64,000 bases of DNA from Epithemia pelagica (GCA_946965045.2 OX337228.1:3348001-3412000), one strand, 5' to 3'; counted from the first letter of the stretch, positions 26,596 to 45,435 are shown. Numbers and translations: made by a program. Notes: a model not told the origin generated them from the letters alone.

Positions 26596-27168
26596 CTAGA
26601 CTAGTCCTTCCGCGTCTGCCCTTTGACTGCATGTCTTAGTTGTCGGGCGATCTTGTCGTCTGTGACGTGCTGCCTTCCTCAAGCTGTGTTCGAGTCGTCG
26701 AAGACTTCGTCGAGCACTTTCATACCCTGGATCATCCCATGGAGTTCCGATTCTACCATAGATCTTGTCTCCCCTGGAATAACAAGACCAAGCATTCTCT
26801 AAGTCACCTTTCACCTCGCGAACCATGCCGATATTGCACAAGCTGTTCGCTACTTCCTCGTGGTCGTCGCCATACAATTTTTGGTAGATCTGCAGGCTAC
26901 CCTTAAAGCTGACCACCGCTGATTTTATGTGCGCTGTTGAAAACTGAACAAACCCAAGTAGATCCAACGCCTGTGCAACGAAAGCATGAGTCTCGCCAAA
27001 CGCGTCTCTCGCGGATCGCCACGCTTCACTTAAAACGCTCATGGCAGCATCCCATTTCTTCAACTGAACCTCGACACGTCCAATGTTAAACAAACAGTTG
27101 GCGTAGAGCGCCATGTTCTTAAGGAGACCATTATGCTCACACAAATTCTCCAGAGCATGTTTGTAGTA
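26596..27168 (-). pseudogene. 3' half of a TPR (kinesin-light-chain-like) gene interrupted by the YR element
   Basis: TPR helices (ANCLFNIGRV, VAQALDLLGFV, VANSLCNIGMV). The frame YYKHALENLCEHNG continues the 5' half once 27169-31307 and one TAGTA are removed. Confidence 0.85.
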
Positions 27169-27348
27169 TTAAGAACTCCCTATGTCTAGTCCCTTTTGAG
27201 GAGGGTCGCCCGGCGCGGAGGGTAGAATGACGAGGAGGGAACACGTCGAGGAGGGCGCATGCCCGTCGAGAAGTGTTCCCGACGAGGAATTCTCCCGACA
27301 AGTAGGGCGCCCGACGAGAAGGGACGGCCAGGCATAGGGAGTTCATAA
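27169..27348. repeat. Left-end module: 21-bp imperfect IR enclosing an array of GAG(G/A)AGG / CCCGACGAG repeats
   Basis: 27169-27189 vs the reverse complement of 27328-27348 is 18/21. CCCG(A/T)C(G/A)AG units start at 27262, 27278, 27294 and 27310 (16-nt period). Confidence 0.8.
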
Positions 27349-27609
27349 ACTTACTCCCTATCAGACTATGAAAGTAGTGAGTCTCACCCGGGTCCATTTA
27401 ACAAACTAGACATTACCAGAAATGTCGCTGAGACAGCCTACGACAGGGGCACTAGTAGCAAGATTTCAAACCATCCGTTGTGACTATTACTTAGGCCCCC
27501 CGATCTCGTCGACGTTCCTTCCCTCTCGTTCTCGAAAATCAGGAAGGAAGGAAGACCATGAGATTGTGCTTTCGACGGCTCCATCCTACCTAAACCAGTG
27601 TTTTGAACC

Positions 27610-27990
27610 ATGAATGTTATAGACTTAGTAACTAGTAGTGAGGAGAATGACTCATCCAGCTCGTCGGATTCCTCCACCTCGATGATGTTCCTCTTCGAGG
27701 ATGACAACATGTGGAACTGGAACCACGAGTACGTTCCGAGGGTCCTCGAGTGCACTGGAGAGTCTGAGGAGCACAGTCTCTCCAGTGACCCTTGGATCCT
27801 CGAAAAGGGCTATCGATGGTAAGTTTTTTGTTTGATTGTTGCATTGTTGAGGCTGTTTGATGGCCGGGAAGATGATTTTTGGCCATGGTGGTCTTCCTTT
27901 TCCGTCGATTTCTTCCTGGTCGCACTTAGCGTTTCCAGGCTCAACGGATTTGAATCCTTCTCTCACTTGTCACTTTTCCTCGGATTATGA
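27610..27990 (+). CDS. Small acidic 86-aa ORF inside the YR element; exons 27610-27818 and 27939-27990
   Basis: ATG start, GTAAGT...CCAG intron at 27819-27938, and a stop overlapping the next ATG (ATGA at 27987-27990). Confidence 0.45.
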
Positions 27991-30873
27991 AATTGAAAAG
28001 CACCACTGTGAGGAAGACCATGATGAAGACTCGACAGACGACCCGCCGAGCCGCAGCGGCGGCAACCACTACCACATCGGAGAAGGAGAACATCACACCT
28101 CCGCCGACGACGACGATTGCGGGCAACAAACGGCCCTCGTGTGCAACGGAAGGTGTGGATGACCCTTCCACCTCCATTCCTCTCTCGATCAGCATTGCTC
28201 GACCAGAACAAGGGTAAGTCTGTTGATTGTTGCTTGGTGGCTTCTTGATTGTTGCATCGATTTCGTTCTTTGCTAACTCGTTGATTGTTTTGTTGTTCAC
28301 AGGGGACGCCGCCCTCCGTTGGAGCCACGACCTGGTGTTCATCCCAACCTTCCCGAAGCTGCCGCGGCTTCCACCAACACAACCGGAACCCAACAACCCA
28401 ACTCGTTGGCCACCAGGTATGTTGATTGTCGCGTTCATCATTGTTGGTTTGCTCGTTGTTTGTTGCGTGTCATGTTGCATTCGTTCTGCTCTAACCGGTT
28501 GATTGTTTTGTGTCAGGAACGAAGAGCCTACCACCGTTGTTGTGGATTCTCTTCCTGACATGGTGAGCTCTCCCATGCGTCAGGTCATGGAGCTCCGACT
28601 GTCCTCCCACCTGATTCCTCCATCGTTGGACGTCATCGCCGCTGCTTTTTCGTCGCGGACCGATCTGGTCGTCGACGAGGCGACCAACAAGATCATGATG
28701 GTGCACCAGACCTCCAATACCGTGCCCAGTCTCCACGACCGCCCGAACGACCTTGCCGCTCTTTCGCGCTATGCCTTGTTGTCCAAGGATGCGCTCGGCC
28801 CGAACACTGGGACTCTTCGCAACTCGTCGCTGAACACCAAGAGCTACGAACGGGAAAAGAAGCAGAACTTCAAACGCTTCCTTCAGACTCTTCAGCAACA
28901 CCACGAACTGGACATCCTGGTCCACCTCTTGCCCGATCCGACGAACCCCAAGAAGTTTACTCTTCGTTTCTTCCTCTTGCTCCGAGGAACGAAGATTCCC
29001 GAGAAGGAAAATACCCTGAACCTGGCAATGTCGCTTTTTGTGAGTACTTTGAAAACGAAAAAAGGCAAGGTGTACCAACCTGCTGTGATCAAGAAGTTTG
29101 TTGATCAATGCTTTGCCGTCTTTCGAAGCAACGGTATTGAGTACTCTGTACCTGATTTGCGTTCGACGAAAGGATCTTTTTTGGCACAGTGCGCGGACAT
29201 CTTTCGGGTGGAAGCCGAAAAAGATCCAGACTATGGACGTCGTCCGAACAAGGCGATGGTTTGTATGAACGACGAAGAACTTTTCCGAACGCAAGCCGAT
29301 CCTCCGATTGACTGGATCAACATCCCCGAAGACTGTCTACGTTGTGTGGTCTACAAGGTTTCTCGCCTGACTGGAACGCGTGGTGGGGAGGTCAGTCGCT
29401 ACTTGTTGTCGTTGATTGTTATTGAAACGTCTCTCACTCATTCGTGTTTTATTTGTAGACCTACTTATTGAAAGCGGACGAAGTGATTCACATTCCGGCC
29501 CTGCCGGATTCCTACGGTGAAGAATTGGCTGGGTTGCCGGCATTCCAACTGAAGGAATGCGACCGAGAGAAGACGTCGGGTCTGACTTTGGCGAAGCCGA
29601 CTCTTCGTGATGACGAAGATCTCGTAGTAAATCTTATTGTAGACGATCCGAACGACGAGTGGAGTACCTACAAACTCCTGAAGCACTGGATTGATCGCGG
29701 ATTGCCGAGAGGATGGAGAGGCCCGCTCTTTCTCAATATTGCTTCGCAGAAAGAGCGCGAGTCTCGTCCTCGCGGGGACGACTGGTGGGCTGGTACAAAG
29801 ATGGTTCCGGACACAAGCAAGGCTGCCAAAGAAGAATACGAGAAAGCCCGAAAGTTAGGTCACAACGTCACTCCCCCCATGCGTCCGTCTGGTCAGTTGG
29901 GCAAGAACTGGGCCAATCAAAACGCGAAGATCTTGTTCCGGAGGTGCGGCCACGAACAGTGGCAGAAGGCCACTTCCCGCACTGGTCGTCGTACTGGTAT
30001 CTCAAACGTGGCAGAATCCGGAGTTCCTCAATTTTTGGTGAACAAGTTCGGACGGCACAAAACGGATCGTGCCAGCTTCAAGTACCAGGAGTTTACGTCG
30101 TCGACGTTCTCCAAGGCCGTCAAGGCCAACTGGTACAAAGGGTCTTCCACCTTGCCCACATCTCCAACTGGTAAGTACTTTTGTTTGATTGTTGCTTGTT
30201 GCGATTTGTGTCTAACTCGTTCTTCTTTGTTTCTTCAGTTGCCAAGAAACAGAATTCTGTCGATGCAACAGAATCTGCCGTTGCAACCCCCGCCACCAAC
30301 GCCATCGAGCCACACAAATCAACGCCGCCACCGAATTGTGATACATTGAATGCAACTGGTTTGGAGGCCGATTCGAAACCGACTGCTAAAGCGATTCCGC
30401 CTCTGCTGGAAAATTCACCGTTCTCTTCATCGGCTTTGCCATCTTCGTCTGTGTCTCCCAAACCGAAGGTACAGCCACAGGCTGTCAATGGCGCTCCTTC
30501 GTATGGTTTTGTTACGCAACAACCCGGTCAGGTGATTTTACAACAACCTCAGCCAATGATGATGCAGCCTCAGCAGCCGTACATGATGCAACAACAATTT
30601 TGCCAACCCCCCTTTCCGATGCAACAGCAACCCATGATGGCCCAATCCATTTTCCCTTATGGCATGAATGGTATGATGCCCATGAATACCATGCCCATGA
30701 ACACCATGCCCATGAACAGCACGCCCATGAATAACATGCCCATGAATGGCTTGGTTGCCCCTATGACCATGACGATGCAACCCAACATGGCTCATCAACA
30801 GCCTTTCCAGTTCATGGGCCAATCTCCCATGGATGCTTCTTCATCCAACCATGAAAAGAAGAAGAAGGATTGA
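27987..30873 (+). CDS. Tyrosine recombinase, predicted 853 aa; exons 27987-28213, 28303-28416, 28517-29390, 29459-30170, 30239-30873
   Basis: Four GT-AG introns are all phase-compatible and the exons sum to 2562 nt. Motifs: TGTRGGE|TYLLKADE (Arg at 29379), RTGRRTG (29978-29998), GRHK (His at 30056), FKYQE (Tyr at 30083). Q/M/P-rich tail. Confidence 0.82.
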
Positions 30874-31307
30874 TCAATGAAAGAAACCTGAGTAGTGGTT
30901 TGATTGGTGAGTCTCATCCTGTTTTTGTTTGTTTGTGTTACGTTTTCCTCAACTTTGTGCTTCTGTTCCACAGGCAGTCTTCCATTCGTCCACGGTAGTC
31001 ACTACTACTGTAAGTAGCTGCTACACACTCTTCTCTGATTGATTGTTGCATTTCCCATTCTCACACAATCTTTCTTCTTCTTCATTTTCCTTTGCCTCTG
31101 CTTTGGTCGTTCTGTTTCCTTTCTCGTTCCGTTGGTTTCGTCGTGTCGGTTTTTCATGGTGCCCTTTTCTTCCTTGGTTGGCTCGCCCCGCTCGTTTTCG
31201 CGCGATTCGCACGAATTTTTGGTAATTACTACTTCCCGCTCCTACAATAATATCGTACTCTAGTATAAAAATGTGAGACGAACTACTTTCATAGTCTGAT
31301 ATGGGGT

Positions 31308-32257
31308 TAGTAGTCTAATGACTCTTCATGAAGTCCCATTAAATTGGCGCAATTCCCGAGGTTGTTTAAGATATCCGCCACCATCAATCCTGGCGCGAGT
31401 TTTCTTTTCAAAGCCAACGCGTCAACAAAGGCTTGACGGGCTTCTACCAACCGTCCTTGTTTTAGGCACAACACTCCGTGGCTTGCTAGTGAGAGCGCCA
31501 CAGGGACTTCGTCACGTTGGATTTCGGATGAAGTCATGTCCTTTTCACCTATCGTAGTCGGCATCTTTTCATATGTCGTTTGGTTCATTCGACTTTTCCC
31601 CGCAGATGAGTCAATGAGGCATGATCTCCAGTGTTTCTTACTTGCAATATCTGAAAGTGACCGACGCAGTGATATCATTTCAGACCGAGAAACTTGCTGA
31701 GACGGCGTTCTCGATCGCGGTCTACTGTCGGGCTGACTACGTTCAGGTGGAGGAATCCGTTGTTGCTTCGAATCTGCCTTGAGTGCGGTAGGAAAATCTT
31801 GATAATCTTTAGGAAAATCGTAATGGTCAGAATCGTTGGCATCTTTCTCTTGACGTGTTTCGGACACGCTTAGGCCAAGCGCTGGTTTTCGATACGTTTC
31901 CATAGAAGGTGCTTGCGTTGAGATAGGACAGTTAGATGATGATTTGGCTGTACCTGTTGTTTCTACGACATGTGGTGGCTTCTGAGTCAGTTGCTGCTTT
32001 TCCAATCGAGGTTGTACGAAGACATTGTTATCATTTCCAATTCGCCTAGTTGATCTGTTGGTATCAGGACGTACAGAGTCTCCACCTCCGTTTTCCGGTG
32101 AGGCGAGATCTGTCCCAGGGTCACTATACTTCAGGTTCATAGGCGTTGTGCTTTCAAAAGACGGCGATTTCCTTCGTATCATTTCTCGAGTTTCGAAGGC
32201 GAGTCGTTGAGATTGAGATGATGCCACGATCATCGTAAGAGATACAACGCAACTCAA
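31308..32257 (-). pseudogene. 5' half of the same TPR gene; its stop codon is created by the insertion junction
   Basis: Ends ...VADILNNLGNCANLMGLHEESLDY*, with the TAA (31309-31307) formed at the junction. The true start is uncertain. Confidence 0.8.
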
Positions 32258-38344: not shown

Positions 38345-39043
38345 TTATTTGCGCATAACCTTGCCTTTCCGTTTCCTTTGAGTATTACTCTGCTCGGAGC
38401 GATTCATCCTTGACTTCGCTTCTGTCGTTCTAGAAGCACTGCGGGTGCCTTTGGCGATATTTAAGTGTTTTCTCTTCGATGGCATATTTCCTTTTAGTTC
38501 GTCTAGATATCTCTCCACTTTCCCAGCATATTCCTGTGCAGCATCCGTTCTTCTACGCCTTTCTAGTCCCTCATCTTTCGGTCCACCACCGTCCTCATCG
38601 TCATCCGGGATTGAGGTTGACGTAGTTACCACGACATGGCCGCCCCATTGATCCTCTGTAATCTGGTCTCGATATTCAGTAATTCGACGTGGAACGGAGT
38701 TTATTGTCACAGGGTTGTTGGGAGGTAGATTAACAGTCTCGTAGTCGTCCATAATTTTCTCGTCAACGATAGGCTCCTTTTGTTGCTCCGAACATAAAAC
38801 TTGCTGCTTCGAAGCATTGTTTCTGTCCCTTCTTGCTTCAAGCTTCCCGTTTCTGTCTTTAACCTTTTGCATGGCCAGACCAAAGGCCCGTCTCTGTCGT
38901 TTCCTCTCTGAAAACCCTCGGAGGTGTTCACGTCGCGCTTCTGGGTCAAACACAAGCTCCTTTACACGGTCCTTCTTCGGCCCATCACGTGACCTGGCAT
39001 GATTCTTTCGGCTCTTTGTTGGTCTTGCTTTCGTCATGCCCAT
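38345..39043 (-). CDS. RRP17: Nucleolar protein RRP17/NOL12 (Nop25) family
   Basis: ELVFDPEARREHLRGFSERKRQRR matches the family motif FDxxxRxxYLTGFHKRKxxRR. ATG at 39043 or 39037. Confidence 0.7.
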   Translation of the reverse strand: MGMTKARPTKSRKNHARSRDGPKKDRVKELVFDPEARREHLRGFSERKRQRRAFGLAMQKVKDRNGKLEARRDRNNASKQQVLCSEQQKEPIVDEKIMDDYETVNLPPNNPVTINSVPRRITEYRDQITEDQWGGHVVVTTSTSIPDDDEDGGGPKDEGLERRRRTDAAQEYAGKVERYLDELKGNMPSKRKHLNIAKGTRSASRTTEAKSRMNRSEQSNTQRKRKGKVMRK

Positions 39044-39147
39044 TGTCGAAATGAAAAAATTGTGTGGGGTTGAACGACTGGACACTGGACGTGGACGTCG
39101 TGCGCAGGTTTTTGGCTCGAGTCCTAGTGCCTCGTCCCTGGGTGTAC

Positions 39148-39307
39148 TGTCTTATTCGGGTCGTGGGAACAAAACCCGGATATGGGAAATCTTTGGGGGT
39201 TTTACCGTTTACATGGTTACTATTTTGGGGATCCTTACATTAGTGGTTTAGCCTTATAATATCTTTTAGATTTGCACGTTGAATAAGGTATCGACTGGAA
39301 CAAGACA
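39148..39307 (+). repeat. 5' LTR
   Basis: TGTCTT...AAGACA; no differences from the 3' LTR seen by eye. Confidence 0.97.
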
Positions 39308-39363
39308 GTTTATCAGACCCACTGCGGTATTGAGAGGAAGTAAACGAAGTGAACTACAGGAAT

Positions 39364-41280
39364 ATGGTAACGAATACTAGAGCTACGACGAAGAATCCAC
39401 CGGAAACAAGCCCCGAAGGGCAAGGAACGGGAACCGCTGTCCCAGCGGGGGGAGCCAGTACGGATACGGGTAGTAGAAAGATGCCCGCGAGGAAAACAGG
39501 GACGGAACGGAACCCCAGTGGTGGTGGCACTGGTGGAAGTACTGGCGGCTCTAGTAATAGAGCCGGGAGTTCAAGTAGTGGAACGAGAGGAACAAGAAGC
39601 GCGTCGACACGGGGCGAAACCGCTGGAGGTGCACCCGCTGGCGGCGGAGACGGCGGCGCTGGAGGAGACGGCGGCGCTGGAGGAGGCGGTGGTGGTGGTG
39701 GACACGGCGATGATGGCGATGGTGGTGCACCACCTCCCCCGATACCGCACCCGCCTGCAGGACCACCACCCGCGCTTTCGCAAGTCGGGCTGGTATTGAC
39801 CGTGTGCGGGGCAAACGCAAACGAAATTCAAGTACTAGAAAACATAGAACGTCTTAATTCGTTACACGCCTTCGGACGAATGAGTAAGGATGATGTCACG
39901 TCCTTAGCTTCAAGGTTGGAGAAACGCCCTGGACCGAATAATATAAGCCTTCCAACAAGCGTCGTAAAGAATCTTCAAGGGCTGTGTTTTTGGGCTTCCA
40001 AGGCCCGTAGACAGAGGCGTGACATCACTGCTGCCGACTTCGACCAAGTGGTACTCTCGGATGCCCTCGACGAGATGGAAATTAAAGCAGAAACTGACAA
40101 GGCACCGGAAATTAAGCCCGAAATCCTCAAGGAAGAGATATGGGAAGATTGGTCTCGCGAATTCCCTACCTATTTGTCCCACATAATTGGGAAGCAACAA
40201 GCCCCACTCGACTATGTAATTAGGCCTGAAATTCAACCTGGACACGTCTTTCAAACTCTCCGAGAGCAAGAATTGTACACTTACCCTCTGACTGGACCAT
40301 TCTTTCACGAAGACAACAAGGCAGTGTACCGGTTGCTTAGTGACCGTGTACGCGACCAACCCGCAACGTGGATTCAACCCTACCAGGCATCCCAGAACGG
40401 TCGAGCGGCATGGTTAGCCTTGGTGGCACACTACGATGGCGGCGGCCAGAAAGAGAAACGTATCAACAAGGCTGAAGCTATCCTTAGTTCCGTATTTTAT
40501 CATAACGAGAGAGCGTTTAGCTTCGACGCCTATTCTACCAAGCTTCTACGTGCATTCCGCACGCTCGAAGAGACACCTAATCGACGATCGAATGCAAATC
40601 AGGTCAAGATCTTGCTGGACAACATCCGAATTGCAACGGCCGAGTTTGCCGTCATAAAAAGCACCGTGCGAAGCAACTACAGGTCTAACTTAGATGACGC
40701 CATCGCCTATATCTCGCGTGAAGTCTCGGAACTGTACCCGAATGTCATCGGAGGCAGTGGCACACGTCCTGGCACTCGGCACCGGTTTATCTCGGAGACA
40801 CACACGGGCGAACAGTCACCCGCTTCCCGTCCACGGAATTTTGCGGGTCTCCAACAGCACAACGGTATTTTCACCTTCTACGGCGTTGACGTCACGGACG
40901 TCAGCCGCCGATTCACTTCCCAGGAGATGGCCACTCTTGGGCCCGCCGGACAGGCGTACATCCATCAGGAACGAGCTCGGCTCCGCAGCTCAGGTGATCG
41001 TGGCGGCCGTGGTGGTGGCCGCGGCCGTGGCTACGGGCGGGGACGTGGTGATTGGGGGCGCGGTGGTGATTGGGGGCGCGGTTCTGCTGCCAGTGGACGC
41101 GGCATCGGCAATGTCGACGTGAATGAGAATAATGAGCCACCATCGGTCATCACAGACCCGTCTGTCGGCGGAGGTACCAATGGACATGCCGCTGGTAGTG
41201 CGGCGAGAACCGAGAATCCCGGTAGCAACGACCGTGGCAGCACCAACGGACGCAGATTCGGAGCCGGCGCATATGAGTGA
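39364..41280 (+). CDS. gag: Copia Gag
   Basis: ATG at 39364; WEDWSREF...PLDYVIRP core; RGG-rich C-terminal part; ends in TGA in frame with pol. Confidence 0.88.
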   Translation: MVTNTRATTKNPPETSPEGQGTGTAVPAGGASTDTGSRKMPARKTGTERNPSGGGTGGSTGGSSNRAGSSSSGTRGTRSASTRGETAGGAPAGGGDGGAGGDGGAGGGGGGGGHGDDGDGGAPPPPIPHPPAGPPPALSQVGLVLTVCGANANEIQVLENIERLNSLHAFGRMSKDDVTSLASRLEKRPGPNNISLPTSVVKNLQGLCFWASKARRQRRDITAADFDQVVLSDALDEMEIKAETDKAPEIKPEILKEEIWEDWSREFPTYLSHIIGKQQAPLDYVIRPEIQPGHVFQTLREQELYTYPLTGPFFHEDNKAVYRLLSDRVRDQPATWIQPYQASQNGRAAWLALVAHYDGGGQKEKRINKAEAILSSVFYHNERAFSFDAYSTKLLRAFRTLEETPNRRSNANQVKILLDNIRIATAEFAVIKSTVRSNYRSNLDDAIAYISREVSELYPNVIGGSGTRPGTRHRFISETHTGEQSPASRPRNFAGLQQHNGIFTFYGVDVTDVSRRFTSQEMATLGPAGQAYIHQERARLRSSGDRGGRGGGRGRGYGRGRGDWGRGGDWGRGSAASGRGIGNVDVNENNEPPSVITDPSVGGGTNGHAAGSAARTENPGSNDRGSTNGRRFGAGAYE

Positions 41281-44200
41281 CGCCAGGCATCAGTGGTCAC
41301 TTGTGGGGCCAGGCGTGAGGTGACCACTGACAAGACGGTGGATTGTAGCATAGGAAACATGGGAATCAGCACTGGGAATGGGAATGATGTTGCATGCAAC
41401 GAAATGGATACGATGGCAGACACCTCCTGCGCTGGTGTCAATTGGACACTCATGGAAACAACAGGAATGGAATGCAAGGTTAGTGACTTTATGGGACAAC
41501 AGGTAGGAGGTCAATACGTACCGATAGCGACATGTGCCACATGCATCCGAGAGAAAAGTACAGGAGTAGAATACATCTTAATCGGCCACCAAATGTTGTG
41601 GTTTGGTAGCGCACTAAAGAAGACTCTCTTGAATCAAAATCAAATTCGGTATTGTGGGCATGTGGTTCGCGATGACCCCACAAGGAAGGAGGACGAAGGA
41701 TTTGGCATCACGGCCGACGGGTTATATATTCCCTTCGAGATACAGGGGACGACTATTTACTTTGAGTCCCGCGCGCCTACCAAGCATGAAATTGAGACTT
41801 TACCTGCGGTGACTTTGACGCGTCAAGAGTTATGGGACCCAAAAAGTGTGGATTTGAGCTTACACAATCGTAGCCCGCTAGATGATGCACGTGAAGAGAT
41901 CTCACTCGAAATTGGCGCGGTCTCTAGCGCATGCGATCCTGTGGCCGTGGGGCAGCGACTCGACAGTCTCAGATCGGTCGGCGGTCTCGGCTCGGACCGT
42001 CACTCGACCGTTTCACCGGAAAATCTCAGCAAGAAATGGAAGATTGGGTTGGAAACCGCGCGGAAAACCCTCCGCGTCACCACCCAACAGGGTATCCGGA
42101 CAGCTGTCACGCCTATAACGCGACGATATCGTGTTGACAACTTGGCATTGCATCGGAATAGATTGAACAGTCGGTTCTATACGGATACGCTTTTCGCTCG
42201 GACGACATCACTTTCGGGACACAAATGTGCGCAAGTATTCACGGACGGACAGTACACGGCCGTTTACCCACTCGCTTCCAAGGCACATGTCGGCCAAGCA
42301 TTGGCCTGTTTTATTGATGAAGTTGGGGTTCCGGATGGTCTGACGGCGGATTTGGCCGGCGAGCAAACGGGGGCCGCCACGCAGTTCACGAAATTAAGCC
42401 GCTTCCATCGAATTGACCTCAAATGGGCCGAAAAGGGCACGAGCAAGCAGAACCATCGTGCCGAGCGAGAGATCGGGCTTCTCAAACAACGATGGCATCG
42501 CCGCATGGTTGATTGTCGGGTTCCTCGTCGTCTGTGGGATTATGGGTTGGTTCATGAGTCGGGTGTACTTAGTCGCGTCGCCCGGGGACATGACAGCCGC
42601 AGCGGCATAGAACGACTTACAGGCGAGACACCCGACATCTCGGAGTGGATCGATTTCCAGTTTTTCGATATTGTCTGGTATCATGACAACACCAAAGCCG
42701 ATACGTCGGATGAACATCGTCACCTTGGGTTCTGGCTGGGGATAGCGCATCGAATTGGCAGCGACCTTTGTTATTGGATTCTCACTAAAGCAGGAAAAGT
42801 GTTGGCAAGGACAACCGTGCAACATGTGACGGAGCAGGAACAGGCGGAACCAGCCATCACGGCAAAGATTCAAGAGTTCCGGTTGATTGTTGAGCAGCGC
42901 CTCGACGATACGAATTTTGTGGATTGGGAGAGCAAGGGACCAGGATTTTTGGAGGACGTAGAGGAACCGGTCGAGGACGACACTCAAGTAAAAGGTGTAA
43001 TTCCGACGGATGAAGAATACGGGAAGATGATCCAGGAACCGAAGCCAGAAGCGGACGACCTTGGCGAGGAGTATGACAACTACTTGGGGGCGCAAATCCA
43101 GTTAGACGTTGGCGGTGAAACGTTGCTCGGGACGGTAGTGAAGAGGAAGAAAGGGTTAGATGGCAAACCAATCGGAACGAGGCACAAGAATCCACTCTTT
43201 GACAGCAGAGCTTACGATGTGAGTTTCCCTGGAGGTGTCATCCAGGAATACACCGCCAATGTCATTGCGGAGTCGCTGTATTCGCAGCTGGATGATCAAG
43301 GTCGACAGTTCGCAATCATGAGCGAGATCATTGGGCATAGGAAAAACGGGGACGCCGTTGGGAAGGACGACGGTTTCATAGTGTCCAAGAATGGGAACAA
43401 GGTACCAAGAAGAACGACGAAAGGGTGGGAAATTGCGATTGAATGGAAGGATGGGAGTCAGTCATGGATACCGCTTCGGGAAGCAAAGGACGGATACCCC
43501 ATAGAGCTAGCAGAATATATAGTCGCACAAGGGTTAGAGCAGGAACCGGCATTCCACTGGTGGGTGCCACGTGTCATGAATCACAAACGAAGGATCATAA
43601 ACAAGGTCGTTGGGAAAAAGAAGAAGCAGAAAAAGTATTGGAAACTGACACACAAGTATGGGGTGCGACTGCCACATTCCGTGGAAGAGGCGTTACAGTT
43701 TGACAAAGAGACGGGGACGACGTTCTGGCGGGACGCGATCGCGAAGGAACTAGGAGTCGTGAAGGTGGCCTGGGAGGCTCGCGACGATCTCGTGCTTGCG
43801 GAGGTGCGAGCAGGGCGACAGCTAATAGGGTACACGGAAATCAAGTGCCACATGGTTTTCGATGTGAAGATGGACCTGACGAGAAAAGCCAGATTGGTGG
43901 CTGGTGGGCACATGACAGATGCCCCATCAAGTCTCACTTATTCGAGCGTTGTGAGTCGCGATTCAATTCGGATAGCGTTTCTAATCGCAGCCTTGAATGA
44001 CCTAGACGTACTGGCTTGTGACATTGGAAATGCCTACCTTAATGCGCCATGTCGCGAGAAGATTTGGTTCCTAGGTGGAGCGGAAGTGGGTTCAGAGTTT
44101 CAAGGGAAGGTGTGCGTGATGACAAGAGCGCTTTACGGGCTAAAATCCTCGGGAGCCAGTTGGCGAGCGACGCTGGTGAGCACTCTCTATGACATGGGAT

Positions 44201-45435
44201 ATGTTGATACCAAGGCGGATCCATGTGTCCTACGACGGGAACGAAAGCGTGACAATGGGGAACCGTACTATGAGCTGATTTTAGTTTACGTTGATGACAT
44301 CTTGCTTGTCAGCCACAAGCCTGAACCAGTGTTTGAGGAGATAGACCGCCATTACAAGATAAAGAAAGGGAGTATCGGACCACCGACCACGTACCTGGGG
44401 GCGCAGGTGTACCAACACAACCTGCCCACAGGGGGAACGGCATGGGGTATGTCCAGTGAGAAGTACGTAAATAACGCGATCAAAGTGGTGGAGCAATTGT
44501 TGCTGGAAGACGGGGACGGAAAACATCTCAAAACAACTGCGCGGGTACCAATCGAAACTTCGTACAAGCCCGAGCTTGATACTTCTGAGGAGCTGGATGA
44601 TAAGATGAGAGCTCGGTACCAACAGCTGATTGGTGTGTTGAGATGGGCGGTCGAGATTGGCCGCGTGGATATCTACTTGGAAGTTTCGATCATGTCACAG
44701 TATCTAGCAAATCCGCGGAAGGGACATCTTGAAGCTGTGTATTGCGTGTTTTCATTCCTCAAATCTCACCCGAAGCTCAAGATGGTATTCGACCCTGTCA
44801 CAGTGAAGCTCGACGAGAGTTGTTTCGCGCAGACACCGATCGAAGAGTGGAAAGAGTTTTACGGGGACGTAGCGGAAGAAGTACCAGCAGACATGCCGAC
44901 ACCACTTGGGAATCCGGTGGAAATCACGTGCTTCGTGGACGCAGATCACGCTGGGAATGTCGTCACGCGTCGATCCCACACAGGCATATTGGTGTTCTTG
45001 CAGAACGCTCCGATCCTTTGGTTCTCAAAACGCCAAAATACCGTGGAAACATCCAGTTTCGGGAGCGAATTCGTGGCGATGAGAATCGCCAAAGAGTTGA
45101 TTGTTGGGATGCGGTATAAGTTGCGAATGTTCGGTGTTCCGGTTGTCGGTCCGGCCAATATTCTCTGTGACAATCGAGGCGTTGTCAAAAATACCAGCAT
45201 ACCTTCATCCATCCTGAGCAAGCGACACAACGCCATCAACTATCATTCGGTCCGTGAAGCGGCAGCCGCAGGAATCGTCAGAGTCGGCAAGGAAGACACG
45301 GAGACCAACATTGCTGACTTGTTTACCAAGATGCTTCCCCAGAGTCGAAGAAATAACTTGATCTCACAGTTCACATATTCATCGGCATTTGGGGACCGGG
45401 GACCTCCCTCACAACCGCGGGGGACAACAAAGTGA
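41281..45435 (+). CDS. pol: Copia Pol (protease, integrase, chromo-like domain, RT, RNase H), in frame with gag
   Basis: PR: EMDTMADT. INT: FYTDT/LTADL/AEREIG. RT: KARLVAGGH, DIGNAYL, LYGLKSSG, YVDDIL. RH: FVDADHAG, SEFVA, CDN, ADLFTK. Confidence 0.95.
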   Translation, partial: RQASVVTCGARREVTTDKTVDCSIGNMGISTGNGNDVACNEMDTMADTSCAGVNWTLMETTGMECKVSDFMGQQVGGQYVPIATCATCIREKSTGVEYILIGHQMLWFGSALKKTLLNQNQIRYCGHVVRDDPTRKEDEGFGITADGLYIPFEIQGTTIYFESRAPTKHEIETLPAVTLTRQELWDPKSVDLSLHNRSPLDDAREEISLEIGAVSSACDPVAVGQRLDSLRSVGGLGSDRHSTVSPENLSKKWKIGLETARKTLRVTTQQGIRTAVTPITRRYRVDNLALHRNRLNSRFYTDTLFARTTSLSGHKCAQVFTDGQYTAVYPLASKAHVGQALACFIDEVGVPDGLTADLAGEQTGAATQFTKLSRFHRIDLKWAEKGTSKQNHRAEREIGLLKQRWHRRMVDCRVPRRLWDYGLVHESGVLSRVARGHDSRSGIERLTGETPDISEWIDFQFFDIVWYHDNTKADTSDEHRHLGFWLGIAHRIGSDLCYWILTKAGKVLARTTVQHVTEQEQAEPAITAKIQEFRLIVEQRLDDTNFVDWESKGPGFLEDVEEPVEDDTQVKGVIPTDEEYGKMIQEPKPEADDLGEEYDNYLGAQIQLDVGGETLLGTVVKRKKGLDGKPIGTRHKNPLFDSRAYDVSFPGGVIQEYTANVIAESLYSQLDDQGRQFAIMSEIIGHRKNGDAVGKDDGFIVSKNGNKVPRRTTKGWEIAIEWKDGSQSWIPLREAKDGYPIELAEYIVAQGLEQEPAFHWWVPRVMNHKRRIINKVVGKKKKQKKYWKLTHKYGVRLPHSVEEALQFDKETGTTFWRDAIAKELGVVKVAWEARDDLVLAEVRAGRQLIGYTEIKCHMVFDVKMDLTRKARLVAGGHMTDAPSSLTYSSVVSRDSIRIAFLIAALNDLDVLACDIGNAYLNAPCREKIWFLGGAEVGSEFQGKVCVMTRALYGLKSSGASWRATLVSTLYDMGYVDTKADPCVLRRERKRDNGEPYYELILVYVDDILLVSHKPEPVFEEIDRHYKIKKGSIGPPTTYLGAQVYQHNLPTGGTAWGMSSEKYVNNAIKVVEQLLLEDGDGKHLKTTARVPIETSYKPELDTSEELDDKMRARYQQLIGVLRWAVEIGRVDIYLEVSIMSQYLANPRKGHLEAVYCVFSFLKSHPKLKMVFDPVTVKLDESCFAQTPIEEWKEFYGDVAEEVPADMPTPLGNPVEITCFVDADHAGNVVTRRSHTGILVFLQNAPILWFSKRQNTVETSSFGSEFVAMRIAKELIVGMRYKLRMFGVPVVGPANILCDNRGVVKNTSIPSSILSKRHNAINYHSVREAAAAGIVRVGKEDTETNIADLFTKMLPQSRRNNLISQFTYSSAFGDRGPPSQPRGTTK

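Follow-up and report, generated by a model that had tools for sequence, protein, structure and literature searches.

A Crypton-type tyrosine-recombinase element in the diatom Epithemia pelagica with a predicted split palindrome at its ends

In a 64,000-nt stretch of the genome of the diatom Epithemia pelagica (contig 1, positions 3348001–3412000 of an assembly of 60.5 Mb in 23 contigs; hereafter the window, whose own positions are used throughout), a gene for a protein with tetratricopeptide repeats (TPR) was found to be interrupted by a 4139 bp insert that encodes a putative tyrosine recombinase. The locus raises the question of what kind of mobile element the insert represents, and of which features of its ends a recombinase could recognise. 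The insert is a Crypton in kind, namely an intron-containing DNA element coding solely for a tyrosine recombinase, and the probability that it is an autonomous, recently active Crypton-type DNA transposon with this recombinase as its sole protein is put at roughly 0.85. Its two ends are the separated parts of one palindrome.

The interrupted gene, the copies and the crossover core

The insert (27169–31307), as read from the window sequence, is bordered on both sides by the pentamer TAGTA (27164–27168 and 31308–31312, read on the plus strand). Together with one TAGTA it accounts for 4144 bp that sit in the middle of a TPR repeat and break the frame of the host gene, which lies on the minus strand and, in the interrupted allele, reaches a stop one codon inside the element. 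When the flanks were joined with a single TAGTA, one stop-free frame of 505 codons was obtained, in which the downstream half of the host gene (26596–27168; TPR_12, E 1.5e-12) is in frame with the upstream half (31308–32257). Both halves match TPR families in Pfam, and the TPR_12 and TPR_1 matches of the upstream half reach its last residue and are severed mid-repeat, that to TPR_1 breaking off precisely at the junction, at position 23 of the 34 in the profile. An insert of this length between TAGTA repeats, with a recoverable empty site, had been proposed in a first-pass annotation of the window, and both the exact coordinates and the empty site were reproduced. The possibility that the insert is an introner was also considered and ruled out, as the element runs antisense to the host gene and its edges, read on the strand of that gene, have no GT...AG.

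All contigs of the assembly were searched for further copies. A copy on contig 3 (C3) differs from the window copy at only two internal positions, 27388 and 29718, and a copy on contig 16 (C16) is 99.2% identical to it, with three in-frame stop codons altogether in exons 4 and 5 of the gene described below. As C3 and C16 have different flanks and begin at the same bases as the window copy, the edges of the insertion are not due to chance, and in the alignment of ends that the first-pass annotation had called for, all copies lose similarity at the same bases, where their flanks begin. These two close copies with the same ends bear out the earlier suggestion of a complete and probably recent element, and it is very probable that the element is complete, autonomous and recently active. 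C16 is itself split at element position 323/324 by an insertion of 18.4 kb (contig 16, 200543–218931) with inverted ends, CATCTAAGGAAGG... and ...CCTCCTTAGATG, and an apparent AT duplication.

Exon 5 of the recombinase gene has 38 matches in the genome in total. Beside the family of the window copy (family A), family B is represented by four copies, with ends about 80–89% identical and a coding region about 65% identical to those of family A, and family C by a single copy with a different, possibly truncated, left terminus. Families D and E are more distant relatives, the element of family E being 5358 bp long with 42% identity in exon 5. Copies of family E that are 95–99.5% identical are located on contigs 7, 10 and 17, and the element on contig 10 (L068:1435-6792) is followed by a second, partial left end (L068:6784-7098) in a head-to-tail array.

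A non-autonomous derivative of 390–402 bp (N) is present in at least 45 copies, a lower bound obtained with 40 of 172 candidates scored, and retains the left 220 bp and the right 85 bp of the element on either side of an unrelated core. Between the Crypton ends, N carries an 11-nt microsatellite, (CACAAGTGTCA)n, as on contig 17 (1615400–1615801) and at about 45 other loci. One copy joins a left terminus of family A to a body that is N-type in other respects, a combination suggestive of exchange between families. Head-to-tail arrays of N that overlap by exactly 5 bp were found seven times, the neighbours having one TAGTA in common, and one N adjoins a family B element with the same 5-bp overlap. 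On contig 8 (1436305–1439996), a tandem N dimer lies right beside the right end of an autonomous element of family D, and three elements are stacked at this locus.

Junctions from families A, B and N (36 left and 33 right) were compared. At the left junction TAG is followed by TA in families A and N (n=32) and by TG in family B (n=4), and the pentamer is constant within a family and independent of the flank; three of the 36 read GAG or TGG, in keeping with decay of these copies, whose divergence is about 5%. The right junction is TAG in 33 of 33, and the two bases after it are TA (18), TG (6), AA (4), TT (2), TC (1), AG (1) or GG (1). The base preceding the left TAG varies, being G in 23 of 33, and that preceding the right TAG is always T. 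As the bases that follow TAG are constant for the element on the left and vary with the target on the right, the ends are not a staggered-cut duplication. Judged from these sequences, TAG is evidently the crossover core, the target approximates to G-TAG-TA, and TAGTA is not a target-site duplication. In the window copy, the TA after TAG belongs to the element at the left junction and derives from the target at the right junction, and the TAGTA pair reflects insertion into G-TAGTA, by chance the most frequent target. Recombination inside TAG between a circle ...GT-TAG-TA... and a target N-TAG-NN would produce this pattern. The fixed TAGTA direct repeat of the first-pass annotation is hence reduced to TAG, which alone is common to both ends across copies, since young copies can have unequal pentamers (TAGTA/TAGTG in C3 and TAGTA/TAGGG in C16).

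The gene and its predicted recombinase

The gene occupies 27610–30873 on the plus strand, and its exons were searched and folded singly, not as the spliced protein. Exon 4 (28517–29390) and exon 5 (29459–30170) are identified, on the strength of structure models, as the predicted core-binding and catalytic domains of a tyrosine recombinase. The AlphaFold2 model of exon 5 has a predicted local distance difference test (pLDDT) score of 91.5, and in an exhaustive structural search (VIA) ranks 1–18 were all recombinases or type IB topoisomerases. Matches of the exon 5 model are XerA (Z 8.5; 143 aligned, root-mean-square deviation 3.2), Cre (Z 7.7), IntI (Z 7.0), XerH (Z 6.8) and QRICH1 (Z 5.6). 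The exon 4 model has a pLDDT of 74 with a core near 90, and matches the N-terminal domain of Cre (residues 26–131; Z 9.9), ALOG (Z 8.1), QRICH1 (Z 7.8), IntI (Z 6.6) and Ndc10. The assignment of the fold is based on the VIA ranking together with transitive homology.

A word-based protein search with exon 5 returned six matches, five from ENA assemblies and the window's own protein. Because this yield was meagre, an exhaustive profile search was used, and a profile of six exon 5 sequences found 119 relatives among 1.84 billion representative proteins. The nearest named homologues are from the diatoms Entomoneis paludosa and Cylindrotheca fusiformis; none of the 119 matches is named as an oomycete Crypton, and Entomoneis and Cylindrotheca are the only taxon names among them. 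Among the relatives are long proteins from diatoms that share this layout, and Q/P-rich tails were found in those of Entomoneis, Cylindrotheca and two other assemblies. A match to Phage_integrase in Pfam was obtained for 11 of 74 aligned homologues (best E 9.5e-11), and the nearest Atlas clusters are Phage_integrase. PF12012 (DUF3504), the family of the animal Crypton lineage, matched none of the exons, and one of the 74 homologues below threshold (E 7.5e-4, 20 bits against a cut-off of 29.7); the likeness to QRICH1 is one of structure only.

Residues R177, R199, H200 and Y209 (exon 5 numbering) are nearly invariant in the 74 homologues. The candidate catalytic set, from exons modelled separately, consists of the arginine in TRGGE at the extreme end of exon 4 followed by K38, R177, H200 and Y209 of exon 5. 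The spacings of 23 residues between R177 and H200 and of 9 between H200 and Y209 are the same as those of R292-W315-Y324 in Cre. The R...RxxR...H...Y motifs and the Q/M-rich tail that had been noted at the outset are present in the translation. Pfam searches of each exon (E up to 1) gave no match, GCR1_C and DUF3435 included, and no other open reading frame (ORF) in the element had a Pfam match, hence neither a reverse transcriptase (RT) nor a DDE gene was detected there; the earlier statements that no GCR1_C-like domain was recognised and that an RT gene and a DDE gene are lacking agree with these results.

Exon 1 (27610–27818), with an ATG at 27610 and a GT donor at 27819, was absent from the earlier model. 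Its ORF shares 79–83% amino acid (aa) identity with family B, with a ratio of non-synonymous to synonymous substitution rates (dN/dS) of 0.39, and is partly kept in family C; the sole in-frame acceptor for it is at 28001. Exon 2 (28001–28213, with an alternative start at 27987) and exon 3 (28303–28416) were placed from the reading frame and the splice sites (GT/AG for exon 2), and match family C at 51% and 57% aa, respectively. Exon 6 (30239–30873) encodes a low-complexity Q/M/P-rich tail and ends with the stop codon TGA at 30871–30873. On the sequence evidence, a gene of six exons and 918 aa appears more likely than one of five exons and 853 aa starting at the ATG at 27987. The 853-aa ORF of the first-pass annotation probably lacks its first exon, the conserved upstream exon at 27610–27818. 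The presumed promoter and 5' untranslated region (27388–27609) are assigned from their position, and a scan for bacterial sigma-70 promoters and terminators is uninformative for a eukaryote. A putative 3' untranslated region (30874–31272), assigned from sequence, has intron-like stretches.

Exons 4 and 5 are under strong purifying selection and the outer exons under weaker selection. The dN/dS value was 0.19 for exon 4 against family B and 0.12 for exon 5 against family C, with synonymous sites saturated, and 0.38–0.66 for the outer exons. The intron between exons 4 and 5 is in the same place in families A, B and C. In Entomoneis, a protein derived from a transcript (P0014, 1027 aa) passes this point without extra residues, and an insert at this point is read through in P0088, an ORF called on another assembly.

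For the 10-mer TTGATTGTTG, 0.34 occurrences would be expected in the window, and 11 were counted (positions 727, 748, 27832, 28223, 28245, 30185, 31039, 42883, 45097, 46693 and 63568). Five of the occurrences are in introns or the 3' untranslated region of the element, near 5' splice sites, and the 10-mer may be a general intron motif of the genome. Elsewhere in the window, positions 39000–45000 have a G+C content of 0.51–0.55 and a GC skew of up to +0.24, above the rest of the window.

The split palindrome and the mode of recombination

An inverted repeat matching at 25 of 27 positions (27361–27387 and 31273–31299) had been described as a subterminal repeat 192 bp inside the left end and 8 bp inside the right end. 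These positions were confirmed, but the repeat does not stand alone. It extends to 39 nt with 87% identity (27349–27387 and 31273–31311), so that the right arm is terminal and extends to the last base of the element. The two termini do not form an inverted repeat with one another; complementarity to the right terminus is found at 27349–27387. The 25/27 repeat is the outer part, or outer stem, of a palindrome of roughly 250 nt that is whole only when the ends are joined. Its predicted parts are a left-end rod hairpin that forms the inner portion (27169–27348), the internal arm of the split repeat (27349–27387) and the right terminal arm (31273–31307), which is kept in all short derivatives within their last 85 bp.

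The segment 27169–27348 alone is predicted to fold as a DNA rod (−44.1 kcal/mol, z −3.7) with regular purine-rich internal loops, and 14 of its pairs have compensatory changes. A natural junction between two N copies (276 nt) folds at −69.2 kcal/mol (z −8.8, with z −7.8 for the opposite strand), and constructed junctions of A, B, C, N and a 75%-diverged N copy give rods of 73–104 pairs with the core in the stem. In an alignment of seven sequences, the 82 consensus pairs were 95.1% paired, compared with 39–46% when the partner column was slid by 1–3, and changes on both sides were found in 19 pairs, compared with 2–6 when slid. The two arms, which are 4 kb apart in the integrated element, co-vary, and the internal arm changes together with the right end in A, B, C, N and the divergent N copy. 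For one such stretch, the two arms are CTTTCATAG/CTATGAAAG (A), CCTACATAG/CTATGTAGG (B), ACTTTATAG/CTATAAAGT (C) and CCTACACAG/CTGTGTAGG (N). The alignment argues that the palindrome is maintained by compensatory changes across five lineages.

A motif, G(A/T)CGAG or GAGGAG, occurs 5–13 times on the plus strand and never on the minus strand, with a period of about 16 nt and in both arms; in the left-end rod it is present 9 times on the top strand and 0 times on the bottom strand. As the reverse complement of the motif is absent from the second arm, the motif is kept as a direct repeat within an inverted-repeat scaffold. Mismatches in the rod on the plus strand are purine-purine in 22–31 cases and pyrimidine-pyrimidine in 3–5 cases in each of the five lineages, an asymmetry that arises because the purine motif is one-stranded. 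The loop sequences of the palindrome are more conserved than the stems. In family E the core is similar (GTAGTAAA), the motif is again present and a natural tandem junction folds into the same rod (−85 kcal/mol).

We propose that the recombinase would pair the two TAG cores and excise a circle with the junction ...GGGGT-TAG-TATTAAG..., leaving the donor site as G-TAGTA-G; indirect signs of such a circle are the restorable empty site and the head-to-tail arrays in which neighbours have one core in common. The circle would next recombine at a different TAG(T/A)(A/G) site. In many cases this would be the half-site at the end of a copy already in place, and integration there would give rise to tandem arrays. 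With its periodic purine motif, the palindrome of roughly 250 nt would be the cis-acting recognition region; the 400-bp derivatives have spread with no more of the element than 220 bp from its left end and 85 bp from its right end. The form in which the palindrome acts may be duplex DNA with binding-site arrays, a cruciform that is extruded, or one strand folded on itself.

The mode of exchange is probably classical duplex recombination with accessory binding sites or a cruciform. In a single-strand route, which is possible but rather unlikely, the plus strand of the joined ends would fold and set TAG opposite its palindromic partner at 27349–27360, a single strand would be exchanged and replication would resolve the product, as for attC or CTX attP(+). 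Such a route would suit the overwhelming excess of purine-purine mismatches on the plus strand in five lineages, the presence of the purine motif on one strand only and loops that are more conserved than stems, and the finding that just 3 nt are common to the partner sites is as for a single cleavage point. However, direct repeats of the motif on duplex DNA give the same asymmetry, the two strands fold almost equally in silico (see the z values above), and there is no known source of single-stranded DNA for the element. In a wobble test for a folded strand, G.T was not favoured over A.C, the two mismatches being about equally frequent, hence no wobble signature was obtained. The idea that the diatom Crypton lineage recombines via folded DNA and not at a simple duplex core site, namely via a strand-specific hairpin or cruciform of the joined ends with periodic purine-purine loops as a recognition code, is likewise considered rather unlikely.

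Different origins of the insert were also weighed. A composite in which 27169–27360 is an unrelated miniature inverted-repeat transposable element (MITE) beside a Crypton with its true ends at the 27-bp inverted repeats would explain why this segment has 19-nt inverted termini of its own (27169–27187 and 27330–27348) and why 400-bp elements bearing it are abundant. However, full-length A and B copies all start at one base and none at 27361, 85 bp from the right end of the Crypton are present in the short elements as well, changes in the segment are matched in the remainder of the palindrome and family E has the same layout at 42% identity. As every A, B and N copy begins at a left end of the 27169 type, the separate MITE that the first-pass annotation had named as the alternative to test is highly improbable. 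Next to no credence is given to an ordinary transposon with terminal inverted repeats (TIR) and a DDE transposase, mobilised in trans, with a 5-bp target-site duplication and with the recombinase as cargo or a host gene. The identical flanking pentamers of the window copy would agree with it, but those of the other young copies are unequal, the left pentamer is fixed for each family, the termini are not mutual inverted repeats and no DDE gene is present in the element, whereas the recombinase gene, which is under purifying selection, is the sole item common to all autonomous families. A tyrosine recombinase and terminal repeats that are split or internally complementary are also features of DIRS-like elements, but a DIRS- or Ngaro-like retroelement that has lost its RT or is supplied with it in trans is very unlikely, as five conserved spliceosomal introns are found in every genomic copy and passage through RNA would remove them, neither RT nor RNase H is present in the element, and the 400-bp derivatives are without internal sequence.

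Several points nevertheless count against a Crypton-type transposon that is complete, autonomous and recently active. Exons 4 and 5 are among the exons that lack a Pfam match, and a sequence search of the PDB with exon 5 (E up to 10) gave no match, such that the fold is assigned with no direct sequence match; Foldseek against the PDB placed the right families on top, but with E about 0.1. The histidine position of H-x-x-R is R174 throughout the family, and the activity of the protein is a predicted one. An empty allele or second haplotype was sought in the assembly and none was found, the flank being present once, and neither a circle junction nor an excision footprint was observed directly. 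The overlap region of classical tyrosine recombinases is 6–8 bp, and a common core of 3 nt is short by comparison. Three copies of a cut-and-paste element also need an extra explanation, e.g. transposition after replication.

To our knowledge, Cryptons are the least understood class of eukaryotic DNA transposons, with no transposition assay, unknown cis requirements and ends that have been described as featureless. The element described here provides a natural data set with two intact copies that have two differences, a restorable gene insertion and a mapped 3-nt core, in which the cis-acting region is narrowed to about 300 bp by at least 45 minimal derivatives and tandem arrays mimic the circle junction. 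The mechanism is testable with a small synthetic substrate and one protein, and the conserved palindrome with its strand-specific periodic motif, which is retained down to 42% protein identity, is a signature for finding such elements in other diatoms. If true, the folded-DNA route would be a eukaryotic counterpart of integron attC and CTX attP(+), and a new mode of eukaryotic DNA transposition.

Comparison with known recombinase systems

Starships, with captains of the DUF3435 type, are like the present element in being eukaryotic tyrosine-recombinase DNA elements with short direct end repeats. However, the element has no DUF3435 match at the threshold used above, is 4 kb in length without cargo, and is found in a diatom and not a fungal host.

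DIRS1-type elements are eukaryotic tyrosine-recombinase elements in which the termini are complementary to an internal region and the complete site is present only in the circle. The present element shares the complementarity of its ends to an internal region, and its N-terminal domain resembles ALOG (Z 8.1), a domain that derives from DIRS1-type recombinases (PMC3537659). Unlike these, it has no RT or RNase H, keeps its introns, would move as DNA only and has tiny derivatives.

The integron attC/IntI and CTX attP(+)/XerCD systems resemble the element in having an imperfect palindrome with conserved unpaired bases at or around the crossover, a very short triplet common to the partner sites and strand asymmetry, and both domains of the predicted recombinase have IntI as one of their best matches in structure (Z 7.0 and 6.6). 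In contrast to these systems, the host of the element is a eukaryote, its palindrome is 3–4 times longer with periodic purine loops to which nothing in them corresponds, the crossover is about 100 nt from the symmetry centre, and there is no sign of a single-stranded intermediate.

The element is also close to CryptonS, including CryptonS-1_PTri of Phaeodactylum tricornutum, which have a stramenopile host, 3–5 kb of DNA, a single intron-containing recombinase gene and no GCR1_C domain, as found here. CryptonS has been described from oomycetes and one diatom, and as lacking GCR1_C (Kojima & Jurka 2011, PMC3212892). A conserved C-terminal region is characteristic of CryptonS, and the C-terminal tail of the present element is of low complexity and rich in Q, M and P. 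CryptonS elements likewise have short terminal direct repeats taken as recombination substrates and few autonomous copies, and some Crypton families have non-autonomous derivatives. The terminal repeats of CryptonS are 5–6 bp, mostly TATGG, with CTGTAAG in the 4671-bp element of P. tricornutum (PMC3212892), whereas the present element ends in TAG(TA); a conserved TATGG is located 9–13 nt inside its right end but is not the boundary. The printed CryptonS alignment has H-S-x-R-R, then W, then Y (PMC3212892), and the family of the element has R-T-G-R-R...R-H...Y instead. Cryptons have been described as having neither inverted nor long terminal repeats (PMC3212892), unlike the conserved split palindrome of roughly 250 nt found here, and full-text literature searches returned no relevant description of Cryptons with palindromes, hairpins or cruciforms. 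While the Crypton class itself is already known, the end structure of this diatom lineage is absent from the literature searched. The first-pass assignment to Cryptons is upheld, as the element contains introns, has the recombinase as its only enzyme and carries a short direct TAG at both ends as the predicted recombination substrate. As the lack of inverted repeats is a descriptive and not a defining trait, the element is filed as a Crypton variant, and its ends and active-site signature, which set it apart from CryptonS as published, make it plausible that it represents a distinct family.

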